A stretch of DNA of 64,000 nucleotides from Octopus bimaculoides (GCF_001194135.2 NC_068988.1:93121306-93185305), one strand, 5' to 3'. Counted from the stretch's first letter, positions 30,733 to 60,215 are shown. Notes: generated from the letters alone by a model not told the origin. Program-made: numbers and translations.

Positions 30733-31131
30733 TCAGTCAGGATCATCATCAATCACTGTATCACTCTCAGAAGTCAGGAGTGTGGTAGGAAGGATTTGGT
30801 GATTTTCGGATGCAGCTGGGACAACATCACCATTATCATCATCATCGTTGTTGTTGTTGTTGTTGCTAGAGGTGACATATTCAAGTGGCAGGTCGACAAC
30901 AGTGGAATCGCTTGTAGGCACTTCAGCAATAACAGTGGCATCGTCTGGAGAGATTTCAAGAACAGGACGACAACGATGGGCAGATATGATGACTTCTTCG
31001 AATAAATCTAAAGTAATTACTCCTTCTGAGTCCAACTGCTCAAGAGCCTGGTTACAGAACTTATGTACAGAACACATCAGATCACCAACAGTCCAGCACT
31101 TTGCTTGGACAATGCTGACCACATCGGGAAA
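30733..31131 (-). CDS. PARG-like exon 10 (FPDVV...WTVGDLMCSVHKF...LFEEVI, acidic tail, stop)
   Basis: GTTTCAG| acceptor and TGA at 30735-30733. TVG.L is the terminal PARG motif. Confidence 0.88.
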   Translation of the reverse strand, partial: FPDVVSIVQAKCWTVGDLMCSVHKFCNQALEQLDSEGVITLDLFEEVIISAHRCRPVLEISPDDATVIAEVPTSDSTVVDLPLEYVTSSNNNNNNDDDDNGDVVPAASENHQILPTTLLTSESDTVIDDDPD

Positions 31132-31381
31132 CTGAAACATGAAAGAGAAACAACATTGAGACAGGAAATATCGTTTTCTTACAAAAATTGGGAAATTATA
31201 AATAATATGCAAACATAGGCACATGAGTGGCTGTGTGGTAAGTAGCTTACTTACCAGCCACATGGTTCCGGGTTCAGTCCCACTGCATGGCACCTTGGGC
31301 AAGTGTCTTCTACTATAGCCTCAGGCCGACCAAAGCCTTGTGAGTGGATTTGGTATAAGGAAACTGAAAGAAGCTTGTCGT

Positions 31382-31417
<36 letters not shown>

Positions 31418-34400
31418 GTTTGTGTGTCTGTGTCTGTTCCCGCCCCATCGCCACCACAACAGATGTTGGTGTGTTTATATCTCTGTAACTTAGCAGTTCA
31501 GCAAAAGATACCGATAGAATAAATGCTAGGCTTACAAAGAATAAGTCCGATGGGGGGGGGCGGGGGGATCTATCTGTTCGACTAAAGGCGGTGCTCCGGC
31601 ATGGCCGCAGACAAATGACTAAAACAAATATAAGAATAAAAGAATAGGAGCCAGTCAGGCGGGCCAGGCATTGATCACGGTCAGACAGTGCTTTTTACGT
31701 GCCAGTGGCGCGGGAAACAGTCAGTGGGTACTGGCATAGGCCACGTTCGGATGGTACTTTTTACACGCCGGGTTCGATTCCTGGACTGGGCAATGTGTTG
31801 TGTTCTTGAGCGAAACGCTTCATTTAGCATTACTCCAGTCCACTCAGCCGTAAATGGGTCACACCGGCAATGGACTAGCCTCCTGATCAGGGGAGATGTT
31901 GGCCTGCCCACCTAGCCAGCATGGTAGGAATCATTCAAAAGCTAAAACAATGCAAAGTGCACAGTGATCAGCGATGTATAACAACATCCAATAGCTTGCT
32001 CATGATCATGTGACGTAAAAGATTATAAAAAAAAACAAAAACATTACAGAATAAACGAGTGTTCTTTACTCACCCTGACAAGTTTTTCACTTTGCTTTGT
32101 GTAACATATAAAAACTGGAGTTTGGATGTATGAAGCAACAATCCACTGGAGCAAAACTTCAAGCTGGGGATTTGATCCAGGGATTCCACACGAACTGACT
32201 AACGCTCGACAATTACTCTGTAAATGAAGAAGGAAGACGGGTTGACCCTTTCAGTGTTTAAACCGACCATGTCTGGCCCAAATATTCATGTTTTTTGTTC
32301 AAACTGATCAGATCCTGCCTCTCACACCTACCCTACAATGTCATTCTAAAGATAAACATACAGATCATCAAAATCTTGAAGCTAGGAGATACTGCAGGAT
32401 TACATTATTCACATTTGATGGATATTTGTCCTCATCTTGTTTGTTGTTAACACAATGTTTCAGCTGATATACCCTCCAGCCTTCATCAGGTGTCTTGGGG
32501 AAATTTCAAACCTGGATTCTCATTCCTAAGATATTTTTCCATGTTATTATTATTATTATTATTATTCATACCCAGTTGAAGGTTAGCATGCCTGCCGAAA
32601 TGCTTAGCGGTAATTCATCTGTCTCTACGTTCTGAGTTCAAATTCCACCAAGGTCAACTTTGCCTTTCATCCTTTCGGAGTCAATAAATTAAGTACCAGT
32701 TGCGTACTGGGAGTCAGCCTAATCAACTGGCCAACTCCCCCAAATTTAATATTTATTTCCAAGCTTGATCTCATTGTAGGGCACCTTGAGCAAGTCTCTC
32801 TTACCATAGCCTCAAATTGCCCTTCATTTTTTATGAGAGTAATAAATAATAACTAAAGCTGAAAGCAATAGTTATCTACACAGTCAACTAAAATACTTGA
32901 CGGCAGTGCCCCAGTATGGCCACAGACCAATGATTTACAGCAATAAGAGATAGAAGTAGGCAGACGTTAAGATTTTGGCAAAAAAACATACAAAGGCAGC
33001 AAACTGACAGAATCGGTAGCATCTGTTTTCATGTTCTGAGTTCCAATTCCACCAAAGTTGACTCTGCCTTTCACCCTTCTCGGAGGTCAATAAAATAAGT
33101 ACCAGTCATACAATAGGGTTGGTGTGATCCACTTTCCTACTCCCTTAAAATTGCTGGCCTTGAGACAAATTCTGAAACCAATATTTGCTACAACTAACAA
33201 AGAAAACACCACTTTGACAGAATTCACCCAATTATTCCTTCTTCGGTTTATTGCTGATGTTATTGCTTGTTTTCTCCAGCAAAACTAAAAACTAAATTCA
33301 TCAGAGTAGACCTTGCGGAGAGAGGAAGTCAGTGAGAAGGTCACATATGGCAACAAAAGGACTGTCACTAACAAACACCCGATCACCTGTTTAACCAGCA
33401 CATTAAACAAATGATCGATTACTTAGTTGGGTAAATATTTAACCAATCGACAAACAAAAAAGAAGTGATATCGCACCAGTGCATATACTGTTGTTATTGG
33501 TGTGATGACCCTCCCAAGACACAAGATTTGTTTCAACTCATGAATTCACATCAAGAACCTTGCAGAACAAATACAGAAGTGAAGTTAATTCATTTCACTC
33601 GTAGTGAAATGAGAAGTTTATGTTTTCGCTTCACCAGTGGAAAAAGAAAGGATTAAAGAATAAAGAGAAAAATATTTCAAAAGAAAAATATTTCAACTTA
33701 CTTTGTAAATGTCTCTGCATGAAGAAACGGTTAAAATAGCAGATCCTATGATTTCTTTGGAAGTATTTTCATAAAAGTCATTTAGAGTTTGAGGTGGTGG
33801 AATGTTTTGTGGTTCGGAATCGATGACAGACATTACAGGAAATTTTCTGTGCAAGCATGGATGAGCAAGTTGTGAAAGGTTCAGAGTTAAATCTTCGCTA
33901 TAGTCGCAAGAAGGGTTTTGCAATGTCAGTATGGCAACATGGATCACATTTTTGGCAATTTCATCAGCAATCATTTCAAGGCATTGCAAACATATATTAG
34001 ATTTAAACTGAACATTACATGGAATGACTCCAAAAATATCTACAAAAGACTCGTACATTATTTCCTCTGACACCTGATCAGCAAATGTTGATAGATTATC
34101 ATCACTGTCCAAAGACATAGAATGAATTTCACTGAAATCTTTAGATGTTGGGTCATCAGAAATATCAGTTCGAGAGATCACAGATTCTTGATGTTGAAAA
34201 TTGTCCCTAATATCAAAATATAATAAGGAATCTGGAGAATCAACACAACTCCTAAGTAACTCGTCCTCAAAACTTGCCAAAGTGTTGTCTTTAAATCCAC
34301 TTAAACTACCGCTATGGAAACTTTCCTGGTGCCAATTATTGCGCAAGCTCAACAAAGACTGGCTCGTTGCATCAGTGCGCATCAGTTCCTCAGCAAACTG

Positions 34401-37400
34401 TGAAAGTGTAATATCGCGGAATCCACTCATGCTTGGTTCAATTGTTTTGTTCTGTTCACTCAAAGAACTTTGCCTCTCAAGTTCCATATAGAAATTGGCA
34501 AGATCTTCCTGAGGAACAAGTTTGTGGTCGAAACCAACTCCACAACAGTCCATGTCTTCAACACTAGTCATATTTGGCAAGCTGGGTCCATACTGGTACC
34601 GTAGCAGCTGTCGGTAATAGGGGTTAATAAGGTAGTTCTCATGCAGTTCTAACAAAGCATTTGTAAATAGTTCCTTCGTAATAGTCAAGGCATATTTATC
34701 ATAATCAGGGAGATAAACTCCTTGGCAACTACTTGAGGTATAAGCAGCTTTTACACCATGGCATTCAATACTGTCAATGAACATACTAATTTTGTGAGCT
34801 GTTTTCAGGCTGCTGTCAAGAATATTTGAACTTAAATCATTAATCCAACACCCAAATGATAAGCTATTATTCATCCAACCAGACAATGAAGAAGAGTTGC
34901 TCCAAAGTGATTGTCGTCGACTGGAAGAAGCTGAAGAAGGGTTAGTGCAATTAACTATAGCTTTGGCTTCCCGAAATATTTGGTTAACTAATTTATCTGC
35001 AACAGCAGTTAAGTCTAGCTCTGTAGACGATGGAGAGTCTTTGTATTCTCTGTTGGATGATAAAATAGAACCAACAAGAGAGGAAATATTTAGACTACTT
35101 ATTTCGTTTAGAGAATCGCATAAAATTTCGTTTGAGAGGTAATCTGAATAACTGTAGATGGCCTCTGGTATGGCTGGCCGGAAAATATTGCAAGCTGGGT
35201 CAACAGACATGATGCTAGCATCAGAAAGATCTTTTAGAGTGCTTAAATTGCTGAAAAATGAACACTGTCTTTGTTGTTCTTTGTTTTCACACTGTAAACA
35301 AATTTCTTCTGAATCAACAATAGTCACCTTGATGTCTTCAAATAAATGATCTACATAACCTTGGACAGTGTCCTCTGATATAAAAGAGACATTGGCATTA
35401 CGATCGATGTTTGGTTCAGGGCCAAATTTAATTGGCACAGGTTTGTGCAAATTAGATGGAAGGTGAATATTTTGAAAGTTCTGCATACCGGTTGTATTAT
35501 AAACAATAGCAGCACTCTCTTGGAGTAGGTTTTCTATAAAGTTGGCAGCAAAATCTTGAACATTGTATGTGCCGATTTCTTCATGAATCGTGCCAGGACG
35601 AGTCGTAAGTTCTCGTTTCATGAAAGATTCATACAATTCTTCAAAGTCTGAACTGATGTCAGAGCTGTAACGTGTACTGCAGCTACTTCGACGGGATGTC
35701 AAATCGCTCAAGTTTGAACTTCGACGTCGAAAGTTTGAGATCCAGTCATGATAATCAACATCCAAGTAATCCATCGACGCTGTATGACCAAAGGTGGACG
35801 CCAACAGCCCACTGCCATACAGAGAACAATGTTCTGGTATAAACTTTGCTATAGACTTGAATTCTTTATCAAAACGAGGAGCCACATCATCAGAGTTATT
35901 ACAAGTACATTGAGGGTTCAATTCACATAGAGATTCAGTGAGAATTTCTTTCGTTAAACGCTTGGCAAAACTATCAATATCTTCGACAAATTTCACTTCT
36001 TTTCTTTCCCCTACAAATATAAACATTTTAAAGATTAACAGAAATCAATATGAATGGAAAACAATTCGAAATAAGGAACAAATTTGCATACCGTAAAGTA
36101 TTAGCATTTTATTTTTAAATATTGGGATTCTGTCAATGGGAATCTCAGTCCGTGCAGTCTCAAGATATGATACGTATATCACAAGACATACAAAATGACA
36201 TACAAATGACATATCAAAAACATGTTGAATATAATGTTCCCATACAGGTATTTAGTGGAGGCACATGGCCTAGTGGTTAGAGCAGTGGACTAGTGGTCGA
36301 AGGACAGCGAGTTCGAATCTCAGGCTGGGTGATGTGTGTGTTTTTATGAGCAAAACACCTAAGATCCACGTGGCTCCAGCAGAAGGTAATAGTGATCTTC
36401 TGCTGACTGTTTTGCCACAACTTTCTCTCACTCTTTCCTCCCGCATCTAGCAGCTCACCTGCGACAGACCAGCACCCTGCCTAGGTGGGGAACCTATACG
36501 CCAATGAAACTGGGAAACCGGCCCCTTATAAACCAGGCATGGCTTAAGAAGGAACAAATAACAACATACAGGTATTTGACAATAATTACTCGTCCAGATT
36601 AATTACTAAGTAAACTATATTTTAACGAATAAACACAAAAAAAAACCAAAACCAACCTTCAACATCTGTTGCTTCATTGGCAATGAGAATTTCGTCCGTG
36701 TTAGATGCCACATTGCTTTTATGGGGTGGCGTCAGATTGCTGGATTCAACATTAGTTACAAGAATGGTGTCTTCTACAATTTCAGTAGTAACAGTTTGTG
36801 TCTCGGAGTTGACACAAACCTGATTGAGAAGAGAATCCTCATCTGCAGATGTGTGATTTAGTGAGCTTATTGCTGGCTGAAAGCCAACCAGACATTTATT
36901 GAGATCTCGCAACAGGTATCGGTCCATGTATTGCCTTTGTTGATTGTTAAACTTGTACGGAAGTGTATTGATGGCGCTAAGCATCGTTTCTAGGTTGCCA
37001 CCAGATTTCCGCTGGAGGAAAAGAAAAGAAAAATGGAAACATTTAAATGCAAAGCAAATAAAGAACAGTTCACTTCTGAGAGAAAATGAATGTATCTACT
37101 CCCGCTTCATGTAAAAAGCAGAAAAAAAATAGTATAGTTAACTATTTTTTCAAAGAGATGAGACAAGATTCCAGCCAGGAAAAAGATGACATGGTGATGG
37201 AATAAAATGGGAAAGAGAGCCATGGAAGCAGTACTGGTGGCACACAAAAAAAGCACACAGCACATGCTGTAAAATGGCTGGTGTTAGGATGGGCATCCTG
37301 CAATAGAAACCATGCCAAAGTAGACAGTGGAGCACAGTGCAGTCCTTGGGCCCATCAAATACTGTCAAACCATCCAAGAGGACAGAGGACCGAAATATGT

Positions 37401-40400
37401 GGTGCAGTGCTGTACTCAAGAAGACCTGCCCACCACAACAGAATTGAGGTCCTAAAACCAAGAGGCTACATATAAAGCATTGGTGAGGGTGCTGGTGCCA
37501 CGTATAAAGCACTGGTACTGAAGACACATAAAAAGCACCCAATACACTCTGTGTAGTGGTTGGCATTAGGAAAGGCATCCAGCCATAGAAACCAAACCCA
37601 AACAGACTACGGAACCTGGTGTGACCCCTGACCATACTAGCTCCTTGCAAACTGTTCAACCCACACCAGCATGGTAAACGGACATTAAATGATGATGATG
37701 ATGATGACGACGACAACAATGAAAGTTAAGTATGTTCATTGTGGCCAAAGATGATAACAAAGCAGCATCCAAACATTCTGAGGGTAACTATTGAAGAAAA
37801 ATATGCAGCCTTTAGGGTTACTCACAGAAGCCTTATCACAGTAGTTTCCAGAGAACTTCAAATTCTCTCCATAACCAGAAAACTCAGAAAACTTCTCAAA
37901 GCCTTTAATGGTTATGGCTTCATTGTCATCCATAGCTTCCATGAAGAGAGTAGAGGCCAATAATTCAGGACATGTCATATAAATAATTTCCTCCTGAAGA
38001 TTTTAAAAAGAACAAAAAACAATTTTTTTAAAGACAAAAAAAAATCAATTGACGTAAAATTAAATGTCTCTTGTAAATACAAATCAAAAAATAAAAAATT
38101 TCATAAAATAGAAAGCAACTGTTTCCTACCTGGCATCTACCTTTACTCAAAATGTGACCTCCAAGAAATCTGTTAGCAAATCCAATCTGAAATTTAAGAT
38201 TAATAAAATAAATGCATTAATTAAGTGATAAAATTACTAGACATTACAATTAAAACTTCTATCAAATTAACTGAAATGTTTTCACCTCTCAACAGAAAAA
38301 GAGAACCTTTAGTCTTGTTCCAGTCATGACCATCCCTCTAAAGCTCGCAGCTAAGTAATGCCTTGAGCCCTGGGACTCATAGTGCTCGTTGCCCAGTTTC
38401 CATGGCATAGGAGTTTACCAAGAATACAATAATCCTCCTGAACAGGGCACCAATCCATCGTAGGGTCATTCGTTGAGAGCTGAGTAAACTGCAGTCACAT
38501 AAAATGAAGAGTTTTAACTCAAGAATACAACATAGCGTCTGGCTCAAGAGTTGAAACCATGATCTTGTGGTCATGAATGCAACACCCAAACTACTAGGTC
38601 ACGTGCCTCTATTGTAATGCTGGTGCTACAATAAAATGCACACAGGACTCTCTGTAAAAACAAAAAGGTTCCTATTGAGAAGGGCATCCAGTCATAGAAA
38701 CCAAACCCAAAATGAAATGCAAGAGTTTCAAGCATGATGCTAGTCATCAGCCATTTTGAATTCGAATGACAGAAGTTGATTGTTATTACTGTAAGGCGGG
38801 CTGTGATTCGTCAAAGAAGGTCACATGGTGTCATGGTTTGGTGTTGGTATATGGGTAACAGCATGGCTGACAACTAGCATTGCGCTTGAAACTCCAGAGT
38901 ACCAGGTGTTGAGATGTTTTTATCTTTTAGTTAGATTTCTTGGAGGTAAATATTTGATGCAAGAAAGGATGACGTTCCAGAAAAAAGACAAAATATAAAA
39001 ATTATTTACCAACCTTTAAAGTGGCACTACTGGCATCATATGTTTTACCATTTTCTCGAACATAAATAGGACAGAGACTGGTAGAGCAATTCTTCCATGT
39101 TTCCAGAGTTGGACGTTTTCGTGGTTCCATTACCTAAAAATGAACAAAGAGTTGACAGAAATCAGAATTTACATAATGAAGTGTTTTCTTTTGCAAACAA
39201 TTAAAAAACAGCAGAAGTAAAGAGGAATTAGTCTCAGAAGAAAGAAATCTGGCTGTTTCTTGCAATAAACACATCTAAAGCAAAACCTTTTTGTTCATGC
39301 ACCTTTCAAATACTAAGGTGGGTCCCCAATTTACTATTTTGCTTGCTTGGAGTTCCCAGGTCTTATATGGATCCCCGATTGAGATCATCATCATCGTCAC
39401 TTAATGTCTGCTTTCCATGCTGGCATGGGTTGGACAGTTTGACTGAGGGCTGGCAAGCCAGAAGGTTGCACCAAGCTCCAATCCAATCTGGCAATGTTTC
39501 TACAGCTGGATGTCCTTCCTAACGCCAACCACTCCGAGAGTGTAGTGGGTGGTTTTTACGTGCCACCAGCATGAGGGCCAGTCAGGCAGTACTGGCATCA
39601 GCCATGCTTGAATGGTGCTTTTTACATGCCACCGGCACGGGAGCCAGTCAGGTGGCACTGGTAACAACCACGCTCAAACAATGCTTTTAACATACCACCG
39701 GCACAGGAGCCAATCAGGTGATACTGGCAACGACCACACTCGAATGGTGCTTTTTACGTGCCACGGGCACGGGAACCAGTCAGGTGGCACTGACAATAAC
39801 CACGCTCAAATAGTGCTTTTTACATACCACCAGCACAGGAGCCAATCAGGCGGCACTGGCAACAATCAACTGAAAAAATTTTTTTTTAATTTCTGCTAAC
39901 CTGTCGTTGTATTTCAATTTCTCCAGTGAAATATTGGCCGGCAGAAGCAACTCTACGGAAATAATGAAGAATACAACGCAGTTTGGCACACTGGGATTGC
40001 CTAAGGAAATATAAAAACAGACAAATTATTAGTAAAAAATAAAAAGAAATATTTAACATGGCATTAATTTTCTTCATAGGTATCTGAGATCTTTATATGA
40101 TGGAGTAGGTTTTGGTAAAGATATCACCATAAGAAAATATCAAATGGTGCATCTACTTCAAAATAGTCATTTAAAGGGAGAAACATTAAAGAAACAGGAG
40201 GAATAAAAATATTTAGATGTTCCAATATCTTTTCTCACATTTGAGAGACAAAAGTTTTCAACCCATCCCCTTTCTACTCAAACAATAGGCATGGGCATGG
40301 CTGTGTGGTCAGAAGTTTGCCTCCCAACCATGGGGTTCCGGGTTCAGTCCCACAGCATGGCACTTTGGGTAAGTGTTTTCTAGTATAGCCTCAGGTTGAC

Positions 40401-40840
40401 CAATGCTTTGTGAATGGATTTCGTAGATGGAAACTGAACGAAACTTGCCATATGTGTGTGTGTGTCTGTATTTTCCCCCCAACATCGCTTGACATCCAAT
40501 GCTGGTGTGTGTACATCCCTGTAACTTAGCAGTTCAGCAAAAAGAGACCGATAGAATAAGTACTAGGCTTACAAAGAATAAGCCCTGGGGTCGATTTGCT
40601 CAACTAAAAGGTGGTGCTCCAGCATGGCCACAGTCAAATGACTGAAAGCAGTAAAAAAATAAAAGAATAAAAGGATATACACATATATGTGACAGGCTTC
40701 TTTCAGTTTCCGTCTACCAAATCCACTAACAAAGCTTTGACCGGCCCCAGGCTGTAGTAGAAGACATACACTGGGACTGAACCCGGAACCATGTGGTTGA
40801 GAAGCAAGCTACTTACCATACAGCCATACCTGCGCCTATA

Positions 40841-40873
<33 letters not shown>

Positions 40874-43476
40874 NNNNNNNNNNNNNNNNNNNNNNNNNNN
40901 NNNNNNNNNNNNNNNNNNNNNNNNNNNNNNNNNNNNNNNATATATACATATATATATATCTTATGTTCATATGTGGCTGCTGTGTTTTCTCCAATGAATG
41001 AATGAGTGCATATGAAGGAACACTAAAGAAGAAGAAAATATATGGTAATTCCTGCTACTTACAGAGGAAGGTAGCGAAAGAAGTTAGAGAAATTAATATT
41101 ATTTAGCCGCGATGTTTTCTCTTTCTTCCTCTCTGGAAACAGGCACAGAAATGCACATGAAATGATGGCTGACATTAAGTTACGGCTGACTGCAATGCTT
41201 TTGGCTGCGGAAATATAAAAGAAAATCAATAATTACTTCTCTGAGAGGTACAAATAGAAAGGATATAGTTCACTGACTTGTAACAAATGTGTGTGTGTGT
41301 GTGTGTGAATGTATATTTGCATGAACCTAATCGGTCTTATGTGTGTTTCTATGCATCAATAAACATGAGTTGTTGCTTTTAACTGCAGGTCAATCTTAAT
41401 TCAAGCAGACCTATGATTAAAGATGTTTCAGCTACAACCACGCCAACTTTTATTCAGACGCAGAGTATATAATACTACATTATCAATCATCTTCATTGTC
41501 ATTTAACGTCCACTTTTCCAGGTTTGCCTGGGTCAGACAGAATCTATGGAGGCAGATTTTTCTATGGCTGGATACCTTTCTTGTCACCAACACTCACCTG
41601 TTTCTAAGGTAAAATTTCCCCATGGCCAAACAGGTTTTCCATAGCAGATTGCAAATAAAAGACACTGCTTGTATAACAGTGATACTCATTTACAACTATC
41701 ATGCAATATCATGTCACTGCAAGAAGGCACGTACGCACACACACACACAAATTTAAACACAACAACCATCTTTCTACCATTAGGGAACCCAAGGAGACAT
41801 ACATCAACCCTTCCAGTGTTAATCTAGAGACTTAGAGATGTGAACATCAGCTACATCAAATGGAAGATCCTTTCTAAGACAAGACCTTATGGTAAAGATG
41901 TTCCATATGCTTTCTTGAAAAACAATATCTTTTGAAGAACCTAAGAACCTCCAGGGACTATACGAAAACCAAAAGCTGAGATGTTCTCATCATGTCCACA
42001 TAGTACAAAGTACTTGTTAGCAGGAATTAAAGATAAACCACAAGAATTAAAGGTAATCAATTCCAATGTTGGTTTATGAAACTTTCAACACTCATAAAAG
42101 ACTGTCTGCATTTCCTGCACACTCAGTTCTCTCCCTTTGATTGTTTTCTGTCTTTTTTTCAAAACGGGTGTTCATCCAGACTTTGATTACACAAAACAGT
42201 TGCTAAACTGCTTTGTTGACTTTGCTAGTTTGAACAGTAGTGGAAAAAAATTCAACATTCCATCCAGGAAAACCTGGTTAGCTGAATTTCACAAGGCTTT
42301 TTGTGTTTCTTAATTATTATTATTATTATTATTAATGAGGCAGTGAGCTGGCTGAATTGTTAGCAAGCCGGGCGAAATGCTTAGTAGTATTTCGTCTGTC
42401 TTTACGTTCTGAGTTCAAATTCCACCGAGGTCAACTTTGCCTTTCATCCTTTCGGGGTCGATAAATTAAGTACCAGTTGCGTACTGGGGTCGATCTAATC
42501 CCACCAACTTGGGAAAGAAGGACATCACTTGTATGACAGTGACACTCATTTACAACAATCACATGATGTCAAGGCGAGGAGACACCAACTCTCACGTGCT
42601 CACACACGCAAATATACATCATCATCATCATCAACATTTAACATCCATTTTCCATGCTGGCATGGGTGGGATGGTTTGACAGGGGCTGGCCAGGCAGAAG
42701 ACTGCACTGAGCTCCAACCGTCAATTTTGGCATGGTTTCTACAGCTCAATGCCCTTCTAAATGCCAACCACTTTATAGAGTGTACTGGGTGTTTTTTATG
42801 TAGCACCACCACTGACAGGGTCACCAAGTACCTTGCAACACACACATGCAGAATGGGTTTCTTTCAGTTTCCATCAATCAAATCTTACACATAAGGGTTT
42901 TGGTTGGCCCAGGGCTATAGTAGAAAGCACTTGTCCAAGGTGACACACAGTGGGACTTAACTCAGAATTGAATGGTTGGGAAGCAAACCCCTTAACCACA
43001 CGACCACGTCTGGGCCAATATTTCCTAAAACAAAAGAAAGCAACACCTGGTTAAAGATAAGTGAATAGCAACTTACTGCATTGCTTCCGACAGAGAGGTA
43101 TACCTTCCTGTGGAATTAACTCCTTGATATTACAGGCCATATCGATAACGGCAGGGAAGATGAAGTGCAGAAAGCAGTCCTTTTCATCGATGCTAGCAAC
43201 TTGTTCCAGGAAAATCACAAGGCCTTGATAAACACATGGTTGACTTTCAGCTGTAGACAGCTCCTTGGGTTGACTACTGCTGGGGCCTTCATGGTAGGTG
43301 AATGGGGTCGGTGGACCTTTGCTTCTGATCTGCAGGAAAATCTGCTGGTGGAGCTGGGCTAACCCTTGAGGCGTAGCACCAGAACTTTGACAGTAGAACT
43401 GAAGCTGCAGTAGCTGCTGACTTACAATGTTCCAGTGAGGAAGGTCACATGGGAAAATGACCTTCCTCACACCCAT
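30733..43476 (-). CDS. PARG-family (poly(ADP-ribose) glycohydrolase-like) protein with an insert of about 844 aa rich in AKAP-like helices; 10 coding exons, about 1397 aa
   Basis: Exons 43476(acceptor at 43482)-43077, 41204-41063, 40000-39901, 39133-39014, 38186-38130, 37993-37826, 37011-36657, 36010-33702, 32217-32074, 31131-30733. All are GT-AG, phases match, and the total is 4194 nt. PARG motifs in order: SCAFLCLFP, INFSNFF, AKLRCILHYF, FANRFLGGHILSKGRCQ|EEI, PELLAS.LF.EAMDDNEAI.I.G.EKFS.FSGYG, RDLNKCLVGF, NPQLEVLLQWIVAS, TVGDL. The start codon is inferred, and a small extra exon between 33702 and 32217 cannot be excluded. Confidence 0.9.
32074..32217 (-). CDS. PARG-like exon 9 (SNCRALVSSCGIPGSNPQLEVLLQWIVAS...EKLVR)
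   Basis: TTTACAG| acceptor and AGG|GTGAGT donor, 144 nt. This is where the PARG fold resumes. Confidence 0.88.
33702..36010 (-). CDS. PARG-like exon 8, 2309-nt exon encoding the Ser/acidic, AKAP-helix-rich insert
   Basis: A 777-codon stop-free frame with TTTGTAG| acceptor and AAA|GTAAGT donor. Phase 1 in and phase 0 out match the flanking PARG exons. Confidence 0.92.
36657..37011 (-). CDS. PARG-like exon 7 (...AINTLPY...RDLNKCLVGF, then the start of the insert)
   Basis: TTTTCCTCCAG| acceptor and G|GTTGGT donor, 355 nt. Confidence 0.9.
37826..37993 (-). CDS. PARG-like exon 6 (EEIIYMTCPELL...FSGYGENLKFSGNYCDKAS)
   Basis: CTTCAG| acceptor and TCT|GTGAGT donor, 168 nt. Carries the catalytic EE and the tyrosine-clasp equivalent. 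Confidence 0.94.
38130..38186 (-). CDS. PARG-like exon 5 (IGFANRFLGGHILSKGRCQ), signature loop
   Basis: TTTCAG| acceptor and CAG|GTAGGA donor, 57 nt. Confidence 0.93.
39014..39133 (-). CDS. PARG-like exon 4 (VMEPRKRPTLETWKNCSTSLCPIYVRENG...ATLK)
   Basis: TTTTTAG| acceptor and AAG|GTTGGT donor, 120 nt. Confidence 0.9.
39388..39870 (-). mobile_element. Family C retroposon with a (GAT)n RTE-like 3' tail and an internal 66-bp VNTR
   Basis: The minus strand ends ...GGAAAGCAGACATTAAGTGACGATGATGATG. Related copies lie near 6770, 9837, 17778, 22235, 22570, 37490, 46770, 58290, 59640 and 62810. Confidence 0.7.
39901..40000 (-). CDS. PARG-like exon 3 (QSQCAKLRCILHYFRRV...IQRQ)
   Basis: CCTTAG| acceptor and CAG|GTTAGC donor, 100 nt. 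Confidence 0.92.
41063..41204 (-). CDS. PARG-like exon 2 (KSIAVSRNLMSAIISCAFLCLFP...NINFSNFFRYLP)
   Basis: CCGCAG| acceptor and CT|GTAAGT donor, 142 nt. Confidence 0.9.
41850..42035 (+). mobile_element. Penelope-like element, GIY-YIG endonuclease C-terminal remnant
   Basis: IKWKILSKTRPY ... KAEMFSSCPHSTKYLL resembles the PLE C-terminus (I.WKI....PY...C.LC...E...CPH..K.LL). It contains stops. Confidence 0.55.
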
Positions 43477-44549: not shown

Positions 44550-46716
44550 TAATCATTTGTATAATTGAAGCATGTAGTATTAGATTTAACAAAGTTGCTG
44601 ACCTTTTCATCAAAGAGCGGTCAACGTTGAGTATAGCACACATATCTTATCTCATGAACTACTTTCTTACAAATGCACAACATATCTAAGAGGTACTCTT
44701 TTAAATGTAACAAGCTTGCAAACACATTTTCACTTGTTTACATGAATTTGGTTTCTGTGGCAATATATTTCTGAAATAAAAACATCCAAATTACCGCAAA
44801 AACCTAGGTTAACAGTACTTTTGTAAATTGTTATAAACATTTATCTGTTATCTAGCATTGACATTTGTCCTTCATGTTTCAGAAGATGACCAAATTAGCA
44901 GCTTAATTCTTTGTAGGTCTTGAGACGGCTTATTAGTTCAATATTCTCATAAAATCCATGCTTACATTGGAGGCACGTAACAGCAGAACCAGGAGCCAGT
45001 GTGGCAGCTCTCCACTCATTAGTTTTTCTGATTATTCCTGCTTTCAGAACATTTTTGTATCACCTCTTTGACCCACCATGTGACAGAGAGTCTCTATCAA
45101 GTGGCAAGATAAAATTCCTAATACTACTGCGCTACAGAGAGCTAATATGTCAAACACATGTTTTCCTAAGTAAACTGCAGTGAAGTGGACATGCATGATG
45201 CCAGACTCCCTAGATATCACACATTAACCCTTTTGTTACCAAATTTCTGTTAAACTATACTGCCTGTTGGAAATTACTATTTGTAAATCTCACAACGAGA
45301 GATATCCAGCAACAGTACTTTGGAGTAGAGATTATTTGCCAACATAACATGGCAGTCCTGGTTTGATGATGATGATGATGATGATGACGATATATTATCT
45401 AATTTAATCTGAGATATCATATCAAATACAGTCTTATATATCATCATTTTGAAGATTTTTCAAGTGTGATCTAACAGAAACATGGCTGCTATTTCTAGCA
45501 GTATTTTATGGTTAGATGACCTTCTGAATGAGAAAAAGCCACAATTCATCTGTTAATTGAAGCGAGAGTGTCTACAGCTGAGTGAAATGTCAATGGTTCA
45601 CTTCCTATCACCAATATTTCCCTCTGTTACAGACAAATATAATTAAATCTCTATTTCTCATCCCCACCCAGCTATGAAAGAGGTTACAATCCATTCATAT
45701 CTCCACACGAAGGTCTCGTCCATACTTATACACTGAGCAGTCCTTGTGTCTTTTTTTCTCACGTGGCTGTGTGGTACGAAGCTTGCTTCCCAACCACATG
45801 GTTCTGGGTTCAGTCCCACTGCATGACACTTTGGGCAAGTGTCTTCTACTATAGCCTCGGGTCGACCAAAGTTTTGCAAATGGATTTGGTAGATGGAAAC
45901 TGAAAGAAGCCTGTCGTATGTATGTATGTATACATCTTTGTGTGTCTGTGTTTGTCCTGTACCACTGACTTGCCAACCGGTGTTGGTGTGTTCACATCCC
46001 TGTAACTTAACAATTTGGCATAAGAGACTGATAGAATAAGTATCGGGCTTAAAAAGAAAAGTACTGGGGTCGATTCATTCAACTAAAATTCTTGAAAGCA
46101 GTGCCCCAGTGTGGCCACAGTCTAATGACTAAAACAAGTAAATGATAGAAGATATTGGCAGAAATACAGAGATTGTAAGTTCAAGACTCACTAAGGATAG
46201 TAATAAGGGGCAGTTGACAAAATTATTAGGGTAACAACTAGAATGCCTTCTAGTATTTATTCTGGCTCTCTCTGATCAGAGTTCAAACCCCGCTTGGTGA
46301 ACTTTTATTTTCATCCTTCATCATCAGCATCATCATCATTTAATGTCCACTTTTCCATACTTTCATGGCAGATTTTTCTACCACCAGATGCTCATCCTGT
46401 CACCAACCCTCACTTGTTTCCAAACAAAGTAATATTTCCGCATGGCTGGACATGCTTTTCACAGAAGACTGCCAACAAATATCCTCACTTGTATTCTTTT
46501 ACTTGTTGCAGTCATTTGACTGTGGCCATGCTGGAGCACCGCCTTTAGTCAAGCAAATCGCCCCAAGGACTTATTCTTTGTAAGCCTAGTACTTATTCTA
46601 TTAGTCCCTTTTGCCGAACCACTAAGTCACAGGGACATAAACACACCAGCATCGGTTGTCAAGCGATGTTGGGAGGACAAACACAGACACACAAACATAT
46701 ACACACACACACACAC

Positions 46717-46751
<35 letters not shown>

Positions 46752-48170
46752 CGAGGCGATGACTACGGACCGAGACCTTTGGAAATGGGCTGTGCGTGAG
46801 AAGACCCGGCAAGCCAAGTAAGATCGTTGCCAGTGCCCCTGGACTGGTTCTTGTGCGGGTGGCACATGAGATGCNNNNNNNNNNNNNNNNNNNNNNNNNN
46901 NNNNNNNNNNNNNNNNNNNNNNNNNNNNNNNNNNNNNNNNNNNNNNNNNNNNNNNNNNNNNNNNNNNNNNNNNNNNNNNNNNNNNNNNNNNNNNNNNNNN
47001 NNNNNNNNNNNNNNNNNNNNNNNNNNNNNNNNNNNNNNNNNNNNNNNNNNNNNNNNNNNNNNNNNNNNNNNNNTTTCGTGCGGGTGACACGTAAAAGCAC
47101 CCACTACACTCTCTGAGTGGTTGGCGTTAGGAAGGGCATCCAGCTGTAGAAACTCTGCCAAATCAGACTGGAGCCTGGTGTTGCCATCCGGTTTCACCAG
47201 TCCTCAGTCAAATCGTCCAACCCATGCTAGCATGGAAAGCGGACGTTAAACGATGATATATATATATACAACGGGCTTCTTTCAATGTCCGTCTATGAAA
47301 TCTACTCACAAGACTTTGGTCGTCCCGAGGCTATAGTAGAAGACACTTGCCCAAGGTGCCACAAGGTGGGACTGAACCCAGAACCATGTGGTTGGTAAGC
47401 AAGCTACTTGTCACACAGCCACTCCTACGCCTGTTGTTTACAATCATCACATTATGTCTAAAGGGTACACACACACACATGTACACGCAACAGATTTCCA
47501 TCGACCAGATCCACACACACAGCTTTTGTCAGCCCATAGCTATAGTAGGAGACACTTGCCCAAAGTGCTGTGCAGTGGGACTGAACCTAAGACCACATGG
47601 TTAGGAAGCAAGCTTCTTACCCACACAGCCATGCTTGTGCCTTCCAAAGATGATAAATAAAGTACCAGTGAAGTACAAGGCTCAAATCACTTCTCCCTCG
47701 CTTTTTTTTTTTTCCAAGAATCAGAAATTTTGCAATGTTAGAAAAGTCATAAGGTGTGGGGGGGGGGGGACACCTGCAGTTTTCCCTTTCTCCAGAAATG
47801 AAGAAGCATGAAGAGAGGGATTAAAATTCTCTCTTCATATGGAAAAACGGTCACTGGAAGCATCTAAAAATGGGCGAATGTGGAGATAAAAAAAAAAACG
47901 AAGATAAAAAGAAACCATTTGTTTAAAGTATAATGTATGATTGCAGAATTGTCAAGTGTTTAATTATAGCACATACAGAGTTGATAATTATATTAATTAG
48001 TGCTTTATCAACTTTGAACATCTACTTAGTCTGAATCCACCACCCAACACCCCCCCTCCTCTTGTCATTAGTGAAATCAGTATCTGTAGATAAAACAAAC
48101 ACCCTAACCCTAATCAGGACTGTGTCTGAGGCTTATTAAATATTCTAAACCGATAATGAGGCTTTTTAGG

Positions 48171-54801: not shown

Positions 54802-55775
54802 CATGTGGTACAGCATCGGTGAAGCGCCGGACTACGTATGTTGCTGCCACATGTGGCACGGCATCGGGAGAGTGCCGTATTACACGACTTACTGTCACGT
54901 GTGGTTCAGAATCGGAGAAGCGCCGGACTAGATAAGTTGCTGTCACATGTAACACAGCATCGGGGAAGCGCCGGACTACATATGTTGCTGTCACATGTAG
55001 CACAGCATCGGGAAAGTGCCGTGTTACACGACTTACTGTCACGTGTGGTACAGAATCGGAGAAGCGCCGGACTAGATAAGTTGTNNNNNNNNNNNNNNNN
55101 NNNNNNNNNNNNNNNNNNNNNNNNNNNNNNNNNTCAGAATCGGAGAAGCGCCGGACTAGATAAGTTGCTGTCACATGTAACACAGCATCGGGGAAGCGCC
55201 GGACTACATATGTTGCTGTCACATGTAGCACAGCATCGGGAAAGTGCCGTGTTACACGACTTACTGTCACGTGTGGTACAGAATCGGAGAAGCGCCGGAC
55301 TAGATAAGTTGTTGTTACATGTGACACAACATCGGGGAAGCGCCGGACTATATATGATACTGTCACATGTGGTACAACATTGGGGAAAGTGCTGGACTAC
55401 ATGTATTGAAAGTGCCGGACTACATGGTGTAGCATCGGAAAAGCGCCGGATTAGATATGTTGTTGTGACGTGATACATCATCGGGAAAGTGCCAGTATAC
55501 ATGTGGTACAGCATGTACGCTGTTGCCACATGTAGAACAACATCGGCAAATAACCAGACTACATGTGTTATATGTGGCACATCATCAGGAAAGGGAGTAC
55601 ATGTGGAACAGCATCAATGAAATGCCAGACTAGATATGTTGCTGTCACATGTGGGACAGCATTGGGGAAGCACTGGACTACATATGTTGCTGTTGCATGT
55701 GGTATAACATTGAGAAAGCACCAGACTCACATGTGGTACAGCATCAGTGAAAAGAGCCAGACTGAATATGTTAAT
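54802..55775. repeat. 48-bp minisatellite, about 20 units, with a 144-bp trimeric higher-order repeat
   Basis: Unit CATGTGGTACAGCATCGGGGAAGCGCCGGACTACATATGTTGCTGTCA. The ORF track shows 16-aa periodicity. There is an internal assembly gap at 55085-55133. Confidence 0.93.
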
Positions 55776-56741: not shown

Positions 56742-59597
56742 GCAAAGGTTGTACAATAATCCTTTCTAATAGAAGCACAAGGCCTGAAATTTTGTGGAAG
56801 GGAGTTAGTCAATTGTATCAACCCAGTGCTATGTGGGTATTTATTTTATCGACCCCTCAAAACGAAGTAAGGTAAAGTTGACCCCAGTGGTATTCGAACT
56901 CAAAAAGTAAAGACAGAGGAAATGTTGCTTAGCATTTTGTCCTGTGTGCCAATGCTTTCAATAACATGGTTTAACTTTGGTTCTGTCCAAGATAACAAAA
57001 ACCCATTCTGGTGTGGTCTTCCCTACAAGAGTTGCTGGTAATTCATTGCTATTAATTTCATTCTCAATGCCTGATGATCATCACAAGATACAGAAAGCTC
57101 TCTCTCTCTCTCCCTCTCATAAGGTGTTGGATACTTGGCATTGTTTCTTTGCCCTCATGAAAGCAGGAACACCCATCCCATCTCATTTTAGATCTTCCAT
57201 CTTTTTCTAAGAAATATGTAATAAACATATTTCATTTAGCAAACCTAGAGCCGAGAGGGCATTTCATTGAGTTTGCAAATAGCAATGAAAGAACTTTCAA
57301 AAACCTAACTGATTGGCAGATTGACTTAACAATCAATTAGTTAATTAGTTAAATAGTGAACCATGCTGTTACCACTTACAAAGCACCCAGTACACTCTGT
57401 AAAGTGGTTGGCATTAAAAAGGACATCCAGCCGTAGAAACCATGGCAAAACAGATGACTGGAGCCTGGTGTAGCTCCTGTTAAATGTCCAACCCATGGCA
57501 GCATGGGAAACAGATGTTAAATGAAGATGATGATGATGACAACAACAATGATGACAACTATGATGATGATGGTGACGAAGAAGGACCAGTGTGTGTGTGT
57601 GTGTTTTTGTGGCTCTGTGGTAAGGAGCTTGCTTACCAACCACATTGTTCTGGGTTCAGTCCCACTGCATGGTACCTTGGGCAAGTGTCTTCTACTACAG
57701 CCTCGGGCCAACCAAAGCCTTGTGAGTGGATTTGGAGACGGAAACTGAAAGAAGCCCGTCATATATATGTATATACATATATGTGTGTGTGTATGCATTT
57801 GTGTGTCTGTGTTTGTCCCCCCAACATCACTTGACAACCGATGCTGGTGTGTTTACATCCCCATCACTTAGCGGTCCAGCAAGAGAGACCGATAGAATAA
57901 GTACTAGTCTTACAAAGAATAAGTCGTGGGGTCGGTTTGCTCAACTAAAGGTGGTGCTCCAGCATGGCCGCAGTCAAATGATTTATATGGATTCATAGCT
58001 TGTAGGGATCACTTTGGTACTGTGTGGTTTTCTTTCCAGGTAAACTAATTAGGCTTAGACAAAGCTTAGATATTGGTGTCTAGTTTTGAGAGATTCTATG
58101 GTATGTATATATATANNNNNNNNNNNNNNNNNNNNNNNNNNNNNNNNNNNNNNNNNNNNNNNNNNNNNNNNNNNNNNNNNNNNNNNNNNNNNNNNNNNNN
58201 NNNNNNNNNNNNNNNNNNNNNNNNNNNNNNNNNNNNNNNNNNNNNNNNNNNNNNNNNNNNNNNNNNNNNNNNNNNNNNNNNNNNNNNNNNNACTGGTGAA
58301 ACCCGATGGCTACACCAGGCTCCAATCTGATTTGGCAGAGTTTCTACAGCTGGATGCCCTTCCTAACACCAACCACTCAGAGAGTGTAGTGGGTGCTTTT
58401 ACGTGTCACCGGCACGAAGGCCAGTCAGGCGGTACTGGCAATGGCCACACTCAAAATGGTGTATTTTATGTGCCACCTGCATAAGAGCCAGTTCAGGGGC
58501 ACTAGCAACGATCTCACTCGAAAGTCCTTACACATGCCGCAGGCACAAGTGCCAGAAAGGCGACGCTGGGCACTGGTGCCATCACGATTTCGCTTTCGCT
58601 TGCCCCAACAGGTCCTCACAAGCTGAGTTACGTGTCCAATGAAGGAGAGACCATAGAATCTCCTATATATATATGATTGAGTATTCCTTGGTATCTTGTA
58701 TCCTAAATGTAATATTCTAGCATAGCAATATGTGACAAAGCCAGACAATTGAATTACAGCCTGTCAAAAACTAAATTTGCTGCTTACTAGATTATCAACC
58801 ACCAGGTTATGGATGTGGAATGAAAAACAGATGCTATAACAAAATAAAACAAAGGTGACTATAATAGCATCTGTATTTTAAATAGCCACTGTTATTCTAC
58901 AATGATCCAATTACTTCATACTTAATTACAAACTAAAAGAGAAAATTGAAGAAGAGGAATAAAAACATTAAACAATATTACAACTTTTTTTTTATATAAA
59001 GAGAATCAAAAGCGATTTCAGTGAAGCCGACATTCATCACCATCATCATTATGTTTTGCCCATGGTCAATGATGGTATGGGCTTGGCAGGATTTGATGGA
59101 CCCAAGGATGTATCATATGCAGTCATCATCATCATCATTATAATTTAATGTCCATTTTCTATGCTAGCATGGGTTAGGTAGCTTCACAGGATCTGCGCTG
59201 ACTCCAGTTGTCTGTCTTGGTATGGTTTCTATGGCTGGATGCCCTTCCTAATGCCAACCACTTTACAGAGCGTACTTTGCTTTTTATGTGGCACCAGCAT
59301 GGATGAAGTTAATGTAGCACCAGTGCCCGCAGATAAAAAATTTGTTTTAGCATTAAAAGCAGTATTAGTTCAAAATAGCTTTTGTGCATCATTCCTATAT
59401 ATGTGTGTGTGTGTGTGTGTATGTATATGTATATATATGTATATAGTTGGAATTTACAGAAAAACAATAAATGAAGATAGGCGTATAAACAACAAACAAG
59501 TGTACTAGTTTAATGCATGGGAAGGTGAGAAAGTCTTTTACATTTCGAGCCTATGCTCTTCAACAGAAAAGAACATGAGGAAATAAACAGAGAGAGA

Positions 59598-59817: not shown

Positions 59818-60215
59818 GGGGTGGCTCTGTGGTAAGTAGCTTGCTTACCAACCACATGGTTCAGGGTTCAGTCCCACCTCGTGGCACCTTGGGCAAGTGT
59901 CTTCTACTATAGCCTTGGTCCGACCAAAGCCTTGTGAGTGGATTTGGTAGGTGGAAACTGAAAGAAGACCATCGTATATATATGTATATGTATATATGTG
60001 TGTGTGTCTGTGTTTGTCCCCCCAACATCGCTTGACAGCCGATGGTGGTGTGTTTACGTCCCCCGTAACTTAGCGGTTCGGCAAAAGAGACCGATAGAAT
60101 AAGTACTAGGCTTACAAAGAATAAGTCCTGGGGTCGATTTGCTCGACTAAAGGCGGTGCTCCAGCATGGCCGCAGTCAAATGGCTGAAACAAACAAAAGA
60201 GTTGAAGAGTAAAAG
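59818..60215 (+). mobile_element. Family A tRNA-derived SINE with an internal TA/TG microsatellite, representative full-length copy
   Basis: tRNA-like head GTGGCTCTGTGGTAAG...GGGTTCAGTCCC, a body, and a 3' CCAGCATGGCCGCAGTCAAATG.CTGAAACA tail. Other copies lie near 515 (5' truncated), 31226, 40288, 45762 and 57609, with many partial reverse copies. Confidence 0.85.

Follow-up and report, generated by a model that had tools for sequence, protein, structure and literature searches.

In this study, we analysed a 64,000-nucleotide stretch of the Octopus bimaculoides genome (NC_068988.1:93121306-93185305; hereafter the window) and found that the product of its gene LOC106877645 is a PARG paralogue whose macro domain is split by a long, largely disordered insertion. 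The best overall explanation, which we hold with slightly more belief than doubt, is that this insertion would act as a multivalent AKAP-like scaffold and that the protein would be a pre-vertebrate relative of the AKAP110 family (AKAP3, AKAP4, AKAP11, SPHKAP). A preliminary description of the window had pointed to nine helices in one exon as docking sites for the regulatory (R) subunits of PKA. That interpretation stood as regards the register of the helices, their conservation, their helicity and their likeness to smAKAP; what it missed was the context, since the exon is an insertion in a PARG macro domain, which links it to the AKAP110 family.

The single-exon claim is correct, because the reading frame that holds all nine of the 14-residue peptides is colinear with residues 448-1217 of the annotated protein XP_014782076.1. 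This frame is a 783-codon stop-to-stop open reading frame (ORF) on the minus strand, like all features of the gene given here in window positions (Table 1), and the 2,309-nt exon 8 that it fills is bounded by a polypyrimidine/AG acceptor (...tttgtag/GG) at 36011/36010 and the donor AAA/gtaagt at 33702/33701. The residue pattern proposed for the peptides is exact in every one of them: hydrophobic at positions 1, 9 and 10, hydrophobic or Thr at position 5, and Ser or Ala at position 13. It also extends further than had been proposed, with Glu, Asn or Gln at position 8 and an aliphatic residue at position 17 in all nine, and a hydrophobic residue at position 14 in eight; position 6 is small or hydrophobic (T/I/S/V/A), with proline in none of the nine. 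AKAP helices follow an 18-residue register that is hydrophobic at positions 2, 5, 6, 9, 10, 13, 14 and 17 (PMC12083921). With the further positions counted in, the nine helices complete this register: all nine agree with it at positions 5, 9, 10, 13 (small) and 17, eight of them at 14, and all are predicted to be helical.

Could such a series arise by chance, or from the mere composition of an exon rich in Ser, Leu and Glu? Taken by itself, the loose 14-residue pattern would leave some room for this, as it occurs about 3.8 times per shuffle of the exon (3.8 +/- 1.9) against 10 matches in the exon itself, an excess of about 2.6-fold, and 17 of 5000 shuffles reach 10. A position-specific scoring matrix (PSSM) of 18 columns, built from 45 helices of non-octopus relatives only, is far more discriminating. 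On the octopus exon it returns exactly the nine helices, at 12.0-26.1 bits, and no other match of at least 8 bits, whereas shuffled exons give 0.08 matches at the 8-bit level and 0.007 at the 12-bit level. The background on real proteins is near zero, with four matches of at least 12 bits in 64,198 residues of canonical PARGs (6e-5 per residue) and none in 21,132 residues of the other window ORFs. By these statistics, this background and the conservation of the positions across phyla, a chance origin is ruled out, and we give it next to no credence.

An exhaustive HMMER search yielded 36 relatives of the octopus protein, among them proteins of gastropods, bivalves, Lingula, Owenia and Tubulanus, so that molluscs, a brachiopod (Lingula), an annelid (Owenia) and a nemertean (Tubulanus) are represented. 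In an alignment of 29 sequences, every helix has a positional counterpart among the 28 relatives, usually starting with [FY]A. The preliminary description had named a lack of conservation in orthologues as telling against its reading; this objection falls, because each helix has its orthologous counterpart. Helix 2 is the best conserved, with [FY]A in nearly all 28 relatives, and the counterpart of helix 6, F/YAxSLSRDLLTNAF, is nearly invariant among bivalves and gastropods. Helix 8 starts with [FY]A in most orthologues, the counterparts of helix 4 include VIADRLVNQIFDEV and SIANRIVSKLFDDL, and helix 5 is the poorest aligned of the nine, the alignment across relatives being weak there. The hydrophobic face (positions 1, 2, 5, 9, 10, 13, 14 and 17) is more conserved than the polar face in eight of the nine helices, and the linkers between helices vary strongly in length and sequence. 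In two other Octopus species the nine helices are identical save for a Gly-to-Glu difference at position 11 of helix 9. Substitutions among the three Octopus species are fewer in helices (1/162) than in linkers (21/608), which is a trend only (p = 0.06).

An AlphaFold2 model of the exon computed with the family alignment has no confident global fold (mean pLDDT 54.5, pTM 0.24). All nine segments are nevertheless predicted as helices, with pLDDT of about 70-90, and are separated by linkers below 50, a picture that fits beads on a string. The same model bears on another explanation, namely that the helices are structural, packing their hydrophobic faces against one another or on the PARG domain into a helical domain peculiar to this family and leaving at most one or two exposed to partners. 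A conserved hydrophobic face would suit packing as well as docking, helix pLDDT values of up to 80-90 are high for isolated helices, and helices 7 and 8 lie only about 10 residues apart. However, the low pTM, the long, variable and poorly conserved linkers that separate most of the helices, the small Ala/Ser residues at positions 2, 6 and 13 that are typical of proteins binding the groove of a dimerization/docking (D/D) domain, and the smAKAP match described below all point the other way, and we regard packing as an unlikely though serious alternative. A tenth conserved amphipathic helix was also observed at about 35301-35375 (TVQGYVDHLFEDIKVTIVD; exon residues 212-236; AlphaFold2 pLDDT about 86), which reads YVDxLF in relatives. 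It fits the AKAP register partially, being hydrophobic at positions 1, 2, 5, 6, 9, 13 and 14 with Lys at position 10, and its score with the matrix stays under 8 bits.

Docking on PKA is suggested by the resemblance to smAKAP. The smAKAP helix given in the preliminary description is correct, as the PDB chain 5hvz_C contains ..LEYAHRLSQDILCDALQ.., and helix 3 shares 8 of its 14 residues. The likeness also emerges from database searches: 5hvz_C, the smAKAP peptide on the D/D dimer of RI-alpha, is the sole PDB chain that helix 3 matches by itself (E 0.25) and the one significant match of a profile of 50 family helices among 177,635 distinct PDB sequences (E 0.0022). The proposed RI-type start, an aromatic followed by a small residue, is found as F/Y-Ala in four of the octopus helices (FA in helices 1, 2 and 7; YA in 6) and at most orthologous positions, and an F/Y-Ala start (the FA motif) has been described as an RI determinant of AKAP helices (PMC12083921). 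The remaining starts are YS (helix 3), VA (4), WI (5), IA (8) and FY (9). RI-selective helices also have hydrophobic residues at positions 17/18, and position 17 of the octopus helices is aliphatic throughout. As to partners, the octopus RI-type D/D domain (C6:81496959 of the assembly) aligns over its full length to that of mammalian RI-alpha (E 7e-20 to the 2ezw/5hvz chain), and an RII-type D/D domain (C5:122685876) is also encoded in the genome. Several of the helices would dock the N-terminal D/D domains of PKA R subunits, above all RI and perhaps also RII or related R2D2 proteins, and most would be of the FA-motif type preferring type I subunits.

The motif evidence is blind to which D/D protein binds, and the helices might dock other members of this group (R2D2 proteins such as ropporin/ROPN1, SPA17 and CABYR, or DPY30-type proteins), alone or shared with PKA as reported for sperm AKAP3 and AKAP4. 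The octopus genome encodes four RIIa-type domains in total, which goes beyond the two R subunits, and sperm fibrous-sheath proteins, which have been linked to ropporin and CABYR (PMC3398308), belong to the closest known family. Against such partners, however, stand the RI-alpha complex as best structural match, the FA start as a described RI determinant, and the conserved R-R-x-S sites within the same insertion, and we consider this alternative quite improbable.

Those R-R-x-S sites lie outside the nine helices, in the block at 35622-35771, which has the highest conservation scores of the whole insertion and reads DYxDWxxxFRRRSSNLSDxxSRRSSxSTxxSSDxSSxFEExYExF across the family. In octopus the block (...WISNFRRRSSNLSDLTSRRSS...) contains two sites of PKA consensus type, followed by an acidic helix. 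By docking R subunits, one molecule could gather several PKA holoenzymes beside its own R-R-x-S sites and beside an ADP-ribose-binding module derived from PARG. Three more RRxS sites (ERRSSEP, RRRSSCGF and SRRSSLSGF) are kept in orthologues and lost in octopus. Two further motifs, related to each other, are also strongly conserved, GF(R/K)DxxLSxFAEELM (34377-34424) and GF(R/K)DxxLAxFExELL (34251-34298), and in orthologues an RRxS site precedes each of them. They contain an F-A pair, yet the AKAP register is not continued in them.

The context of the exon became evident from the domains of the protein. XP_014782076.1 contains both the helical domain and the macro domain of a PARG: Pfam PARG_cat_N (PF20811) matches residues 97-213 with 80.6 bits, and PARG_cat_C (PF05028) matches residues 225-379 with 152.7 bits, over profile positions 2-156 of 207. 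The orthologues have a further PARG_cat_C stretch at their far C-terminus. The Haliotis orthologue aligns with the PARG structure 8adj_A in two pieces, residues 98-375 with chain positions 176-458 and residues 1329-1414 with 468-553, so that about 950 residues, between '...ELNKAxxGF' and 'ATGNWGCGAFGGD', stand in place of a 9-residue PARG loop. The insertion point lies just before the diphosphate-binding loop, and the insertion, of which exon 8 is the bulk, measures about 850 residues in octopus and 850-950 across the family. Two divergent relatives in unrelated ENA genomes show the same split, with a PARG exon, one large insert exon and a PARG exon with intact loop. Divergent relatives with this layout lie on large eukaryotic contigs of metagenome assemblies (L009 and L010 in ERZ26052378, L011 in ERZ25069859) and have a distinctive HLDW(F/Y)AQDLL helix; two copies of a divergent relative lie on separate contigs within one assembly.

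This arrangement is of interest because AKAP3, AKAP4, AKAP11 and SPHKAP are reported to end in a stretch remotely homologous to the C-terminal portion of the PARG macro domain, and the N-terminal part 'appears to have been lost' (PMC11377751). The piece of the insert-bearing family that follows the insertion shares this C-terminal homology. In hhalign comparisons it matches the AKAP4 C-terminus with 96.7% probability (E 3.5e-10), and AKAP3 and AKAP4 together with 96.4% (E 1.2e-9), and in both runs the homology opens exactly at the end of the invertebrate insertion. Against a model of the insert family the AKAP4 C-terminus scores 45.9 bits, and against canonical animal PARGs 27.9 bits; for AKAP3 the two values are 34.4 and 30.0 bits. 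Applied to AKAP3, the invertebrate helix matrix picks residues 127-144, YANRLTNLVIAMARKEIN, which we take to be the known R-binding helix of that protein. Applied to human AKAP4, it gives four matches, two of which (220-237 and 325/336-353) agree with the stretches F219-A232 and I336-K345 that Miki and Eddy mapped as PKA tethers (cited in PMC6933317). Four matrix helices for two mapped tethers also lend something to the packing alternative. Since an end piece of the same PARG subtype, a helix region of the same motif directly upstream and coincident boundaries occur together, we put the insert-bearing PARG family forward as the best candidate for what AKAP110 was before the vertebrates, a proposal that seems to us about evenly balanced or a little better. 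AKAP3, AKAP4, AKAP11 and SPHKAP would then have retained just the helix-bearing region and the post-insert PARG piece.

Several points weigh against the scaffold and its kinship with AKAP110, and we consider them together here. The Pfam models for AKAPs left the octopus protein unmatched: with RII_binding_1 (PF10522), SmAKAP (PF15127) and AKAP_110 (PF05716), there was no match in the protein, the exon or the nine 30-mers at E up to 10, and AKAP_110 found none in the octopus genome. LOC106877645 is thus not assigned to the Pfam AKAP_110 family. A canonical F/Y-Ala start is present in just four of the nine octopus helices, and helix 9, which in orthologues starts with [FY]A, is degenerate in octopus through a Thr at position 5 and a Gly at position 11. 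Part of the specificity of the helix profile is built in, because its members were gathered with an AKAP-register pattern, but its outcome is still informative in that no other PDB entry, RII-type AKAP peptides included, was matched. The profile-profile comparison of the helix region of the insert with that of AKAP3/4 was not significant (hhalign, best E 0.033, probability 1.5%), so that homology of the helices is proposed from position and motif alone. Plant PARGs match the AKAP C-termini as well as the insert family does. In a tree, AKAP4 falls outside the canonical animal PARG clade (100/97) and beside the octopus sequence, but this placement is weak, because a branch of length 5.9 paired with the other loop-less sequence may reflect long-branch attraction. 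Finally, the AKAP3 and AKAP4 sequences used were validated solely by how they score with Pfam AKAP_110 (1438.9 and 383 bits, against a cut-off of 25 bits), which we consider adequate. With these points set against the evidence above, the AKAP reading of the nine helices is partly supported.

Some related searches may be recorded beside these results. Sub-threshold or weak matches to AKAP models occur in orthologues: Lingula to AKAP_110 (18.7 bits, E 6e-4, over the C-terminal 57 profile positions only), Mya and Pinctada to SmAKAP (E 0.036 and 0.77), and Patella to RII_binding_1 (16 bits). The Gly of helix 9 (33744-33746, in FYENTSKEIIGSAI), which is unfavourable for a helix, is specific to O. 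bimaculoides, with Glu in O. sinensis and O. vulgaris. The motif QW(I/M)AAS was considered as a possible synapomorphy uniting the insert family with the AKAPs and rejected, as plant PARGs also carry it. A human AKAP11 sequence had no Pfam match at all, was thus unvalidated and was not used. A word-indexed homology search with the exon gave a single, partial relative, owing to its length filter. The same kind of search with the C-terminal family alignment returned matches dominated by canonical PARGs through GNWGCGAFGGD words, and one aimed at vertebrate AKAPs with the 86 residues that follow the loop in the Tubulanus orthologue, over 12 candidates, returned only the self-match.

Whether the members of this family are enzymes is a separate question. 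The catalytic signature of PARGs (GGG-X6-8-QEE together with GNWGCGAFGGD) is present in the mollusc, brachiopod and nemertean orthologues and incomplete in the octopus copy. There, GGHILSKGRCQEE has GGH for GGG before QEE (exons 5-6), the third Gly being lost and QEE kept, and exon 9 has SSCGIPGSNP where orthologues have the diphosphate-binding loop. Because this loop is lost, the octopus copy would serve as a scaffold and is probably a pseudo-enzyme, while the orthologues, which keep the full signature, may be catalytically active. A separate canonical PARG gene lies on another contig of the octopus genome. A bolder proposal is that the lophotrochozoan orthologues are competent PARGs carrying up to nine RI-type docking helices and PKA sites in the loop before the diphosphate-binding loop, and that they also represent the bilaterian ancestor of AKAP110, which would have arisen by loss of the N-terminal enzyme half; we find this combination doubtful. 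In O. vulgaris, the gene model CAI9727037.1 (1350 aa) has no equivalent of exon 9, with ...DIYK joined straight to FPDVVSIV. Either the annotation differs here, or the model represents an isoform without the degenerate loop and the LQWIVAS segment.

The entire coding region of LOC106877645 (XP_014782076.1, 1397 aa), currently annotated as 'uncharacterized' or, automatically, as PARG, lies inside the window (43476..30736) and comprises ten coding exons. The exon map was obtained by tblastn of the protein against the window; bounds marked ~ are approximate.

Table 1. Coding exons of LOC106877645, nine helices of its insertion and other conserved elements, in window positions (AlphaFold2 helices by residue of the modelled exon)
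Feature	Position	Strand	Sequence	Start	14-mer	PSSM (bits)	AlphaFold2 helix	Remarks
Exon 1	~43476-43072	minus						tblastn
Exon 2	~41205-41062	minus						tblastn
Exon 3	~40074-39898	minus						tblastn
Exon 4	~39133-39008	minus						tblastn
Exon 5	~38192-38130	minus						tblastn
Exon 6	~37996-37826	minus						tblastn
Exon 7	~37011-36655	minus						tblastn
Exon 8	36010-33702	minus						2,309 nt, residues 448-1217; from splice sites, ORF and colinearity; carries all nine helices
Helix 1	35969-35916	minus	FAKRLTKEILTESLCELN	FA	35969-35928	22.4	7-30, pLDDT ~80	orthologous column present
Conserved block	35771-35622	minus	DYLDVDYHDWISNFRRRSSNLSDLTSRRSSCSTRYSSDISSDFEELYESF					most conserved block of the insertion; nearly invariant columns R94-S120
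Helix 2	35552-35499	minus	FAANFIENLLQESAAIVY	FA	35552-35511	16.5	149-171, pLDDT 86-88	
Helix 3	35150-35097	minus	YSDYLSNEILCDSLNEIS	YS	35150-35109	26.1	282-305	
Helix 4	35003-34950	minus	VADKLVNQIFREAKAIVN	VA (aliphatic-Ala)	35003-34962	12.0	333-353	
Helix 5	34847-34794	minus	WINDLSSNILDSSLKTAH	WI	34847-34806	14.3	381-416	
Helix 6	34694-34641	minus	YALTITKELFTNALLELH	YA	34694-34653	16.7	436-460	
Motif copy 1	34424-34377	minus	GFRDITLSQFAEELMR				533-544, pLDDT ~83	invariant F, D, L, S, F, A, E and L columns
Motif copy 2	34298-34251	minus	GFKDNTLASFEDELLR				575-586	related to copy 1
Helix 7	34085-34032	minus	FADQVSEEIMYESFVDIF	FA	34085-34044	22.3	637-659	orthologous column present
Helix 8	33971-33918	minus	IADEIAKNVIHVAILTLQ	IA (aliphatic-Ala)	33971-33930	19.3	670-697	
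Helix 9	33776-33723	minus	FYENTSKEIIGSAILTVS	FY	33776-33735	12.5	739-768	
Exon 9	32220-32074	minus						PARG piece after the insert; degenerate diphosphate-binding loop, then LLQWIVAS
Exon 10	~31140-30736	minus						tblastn

Elsewhere in the window, an ORF on the minus strand at 5358-5741 matches the hAT dimerisation domain below threshold (19.2 bits against a cut-off of 21.4) and is probably a decayed hAT transposon. A minisatellite at 54802-55402 has a 48-bp unit and a 144-bp higher-order period, in about 6 + 6 copies with 72-93% matches and an N gap inside. A short interspersed repeat occurs on both strands, at about 30736-31320, 45698-45991, 47299-47601, 57520-57852 and 59864-60175. The window also holds TA/CA microsatellites, and its assembly gaps total 2,229 Ns.

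An intact PARG with an AKAP-type multi-helix insertion in lophotrochozoans appears to be undescribed; in the searchable literature the link between PARG and AKAPs is made only in PMC11377751, for human proteins only. The octopus gene and its relatives look like a missing intermediate, a complete PARG with a helix-bearing region inserted in a surface loop. If this is true, the origin of the AKAP110 family would be explained, docking helices of FA type would predate vertebrates, and a testable case of a PKA scaffold of high multivalence, perhaps with a tie to ADP-ribose signalling, would be at hand. Were the orthologues competent PARGs that also dock PKA, a single protein would physically link cAMP/PKA signalling to poly(ADP-ribose) turnover. 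Were they to represent the bilaterian ancestor, the origin of multi-helix RI-type anchoring would shift from the vertebrate stem to before the split of protostomes and deuterostomes.

The protein of LOC106877645 can be compared with its closest known systems. With canonical PARGs it shares PARG_cat_N and PARG_cat_C, the QEE catalytic pair and the order of the fold, but it differs from them in the insertion before the diphosphate loop and, in octopus, in GGH and the lost loop. Moreover, the post-insert segment of the family is of the 'QW-AAS' type, as in plant PARGs, whereas animal PARGs have 'QLMAAA'. With smAKAP (C2orf88; 5HVZ), helix 3 has in common the identities given above, the register, the aromatic-small start and an I-L-C-D core. 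However, smAKAP is only about 100 residues long, has a single helix and carries a lipid anchor, and its homology to the octopus protein is confined to the helix. SKIP (SPHKAP) and AKAP220 (AKAP11), two members of the AKAP110 family, are the known multi-helix AKAPs, and together with smAKAP these RI-selective and multi-helix AKAPs have been placed at the vertebrate base, in contrast to the insert-bearing family, which is lophotrochozoan (PMC12083921 for the vertebrate proteins). Compared with the AKAP110 family, the octopus protein and its relatives keep the full N-terminal helical domain of PARG and the first three quarters of the macro domain, and the octopus copy keeps QEE. It has nine helices instead of one or two mapped sites, no Pfam AKAP_110 match, and a helix region that cannot be aligned with theirs at significance. 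What the two have in common is a plan in which several FA-type helices precede a C-terminal domain that stems from the end of the PARG macro domain and, in the octopus copy, the absence of the GNWGCGAFGGD loop, in place of which AKAP4 has NNQCSTNSLQ.

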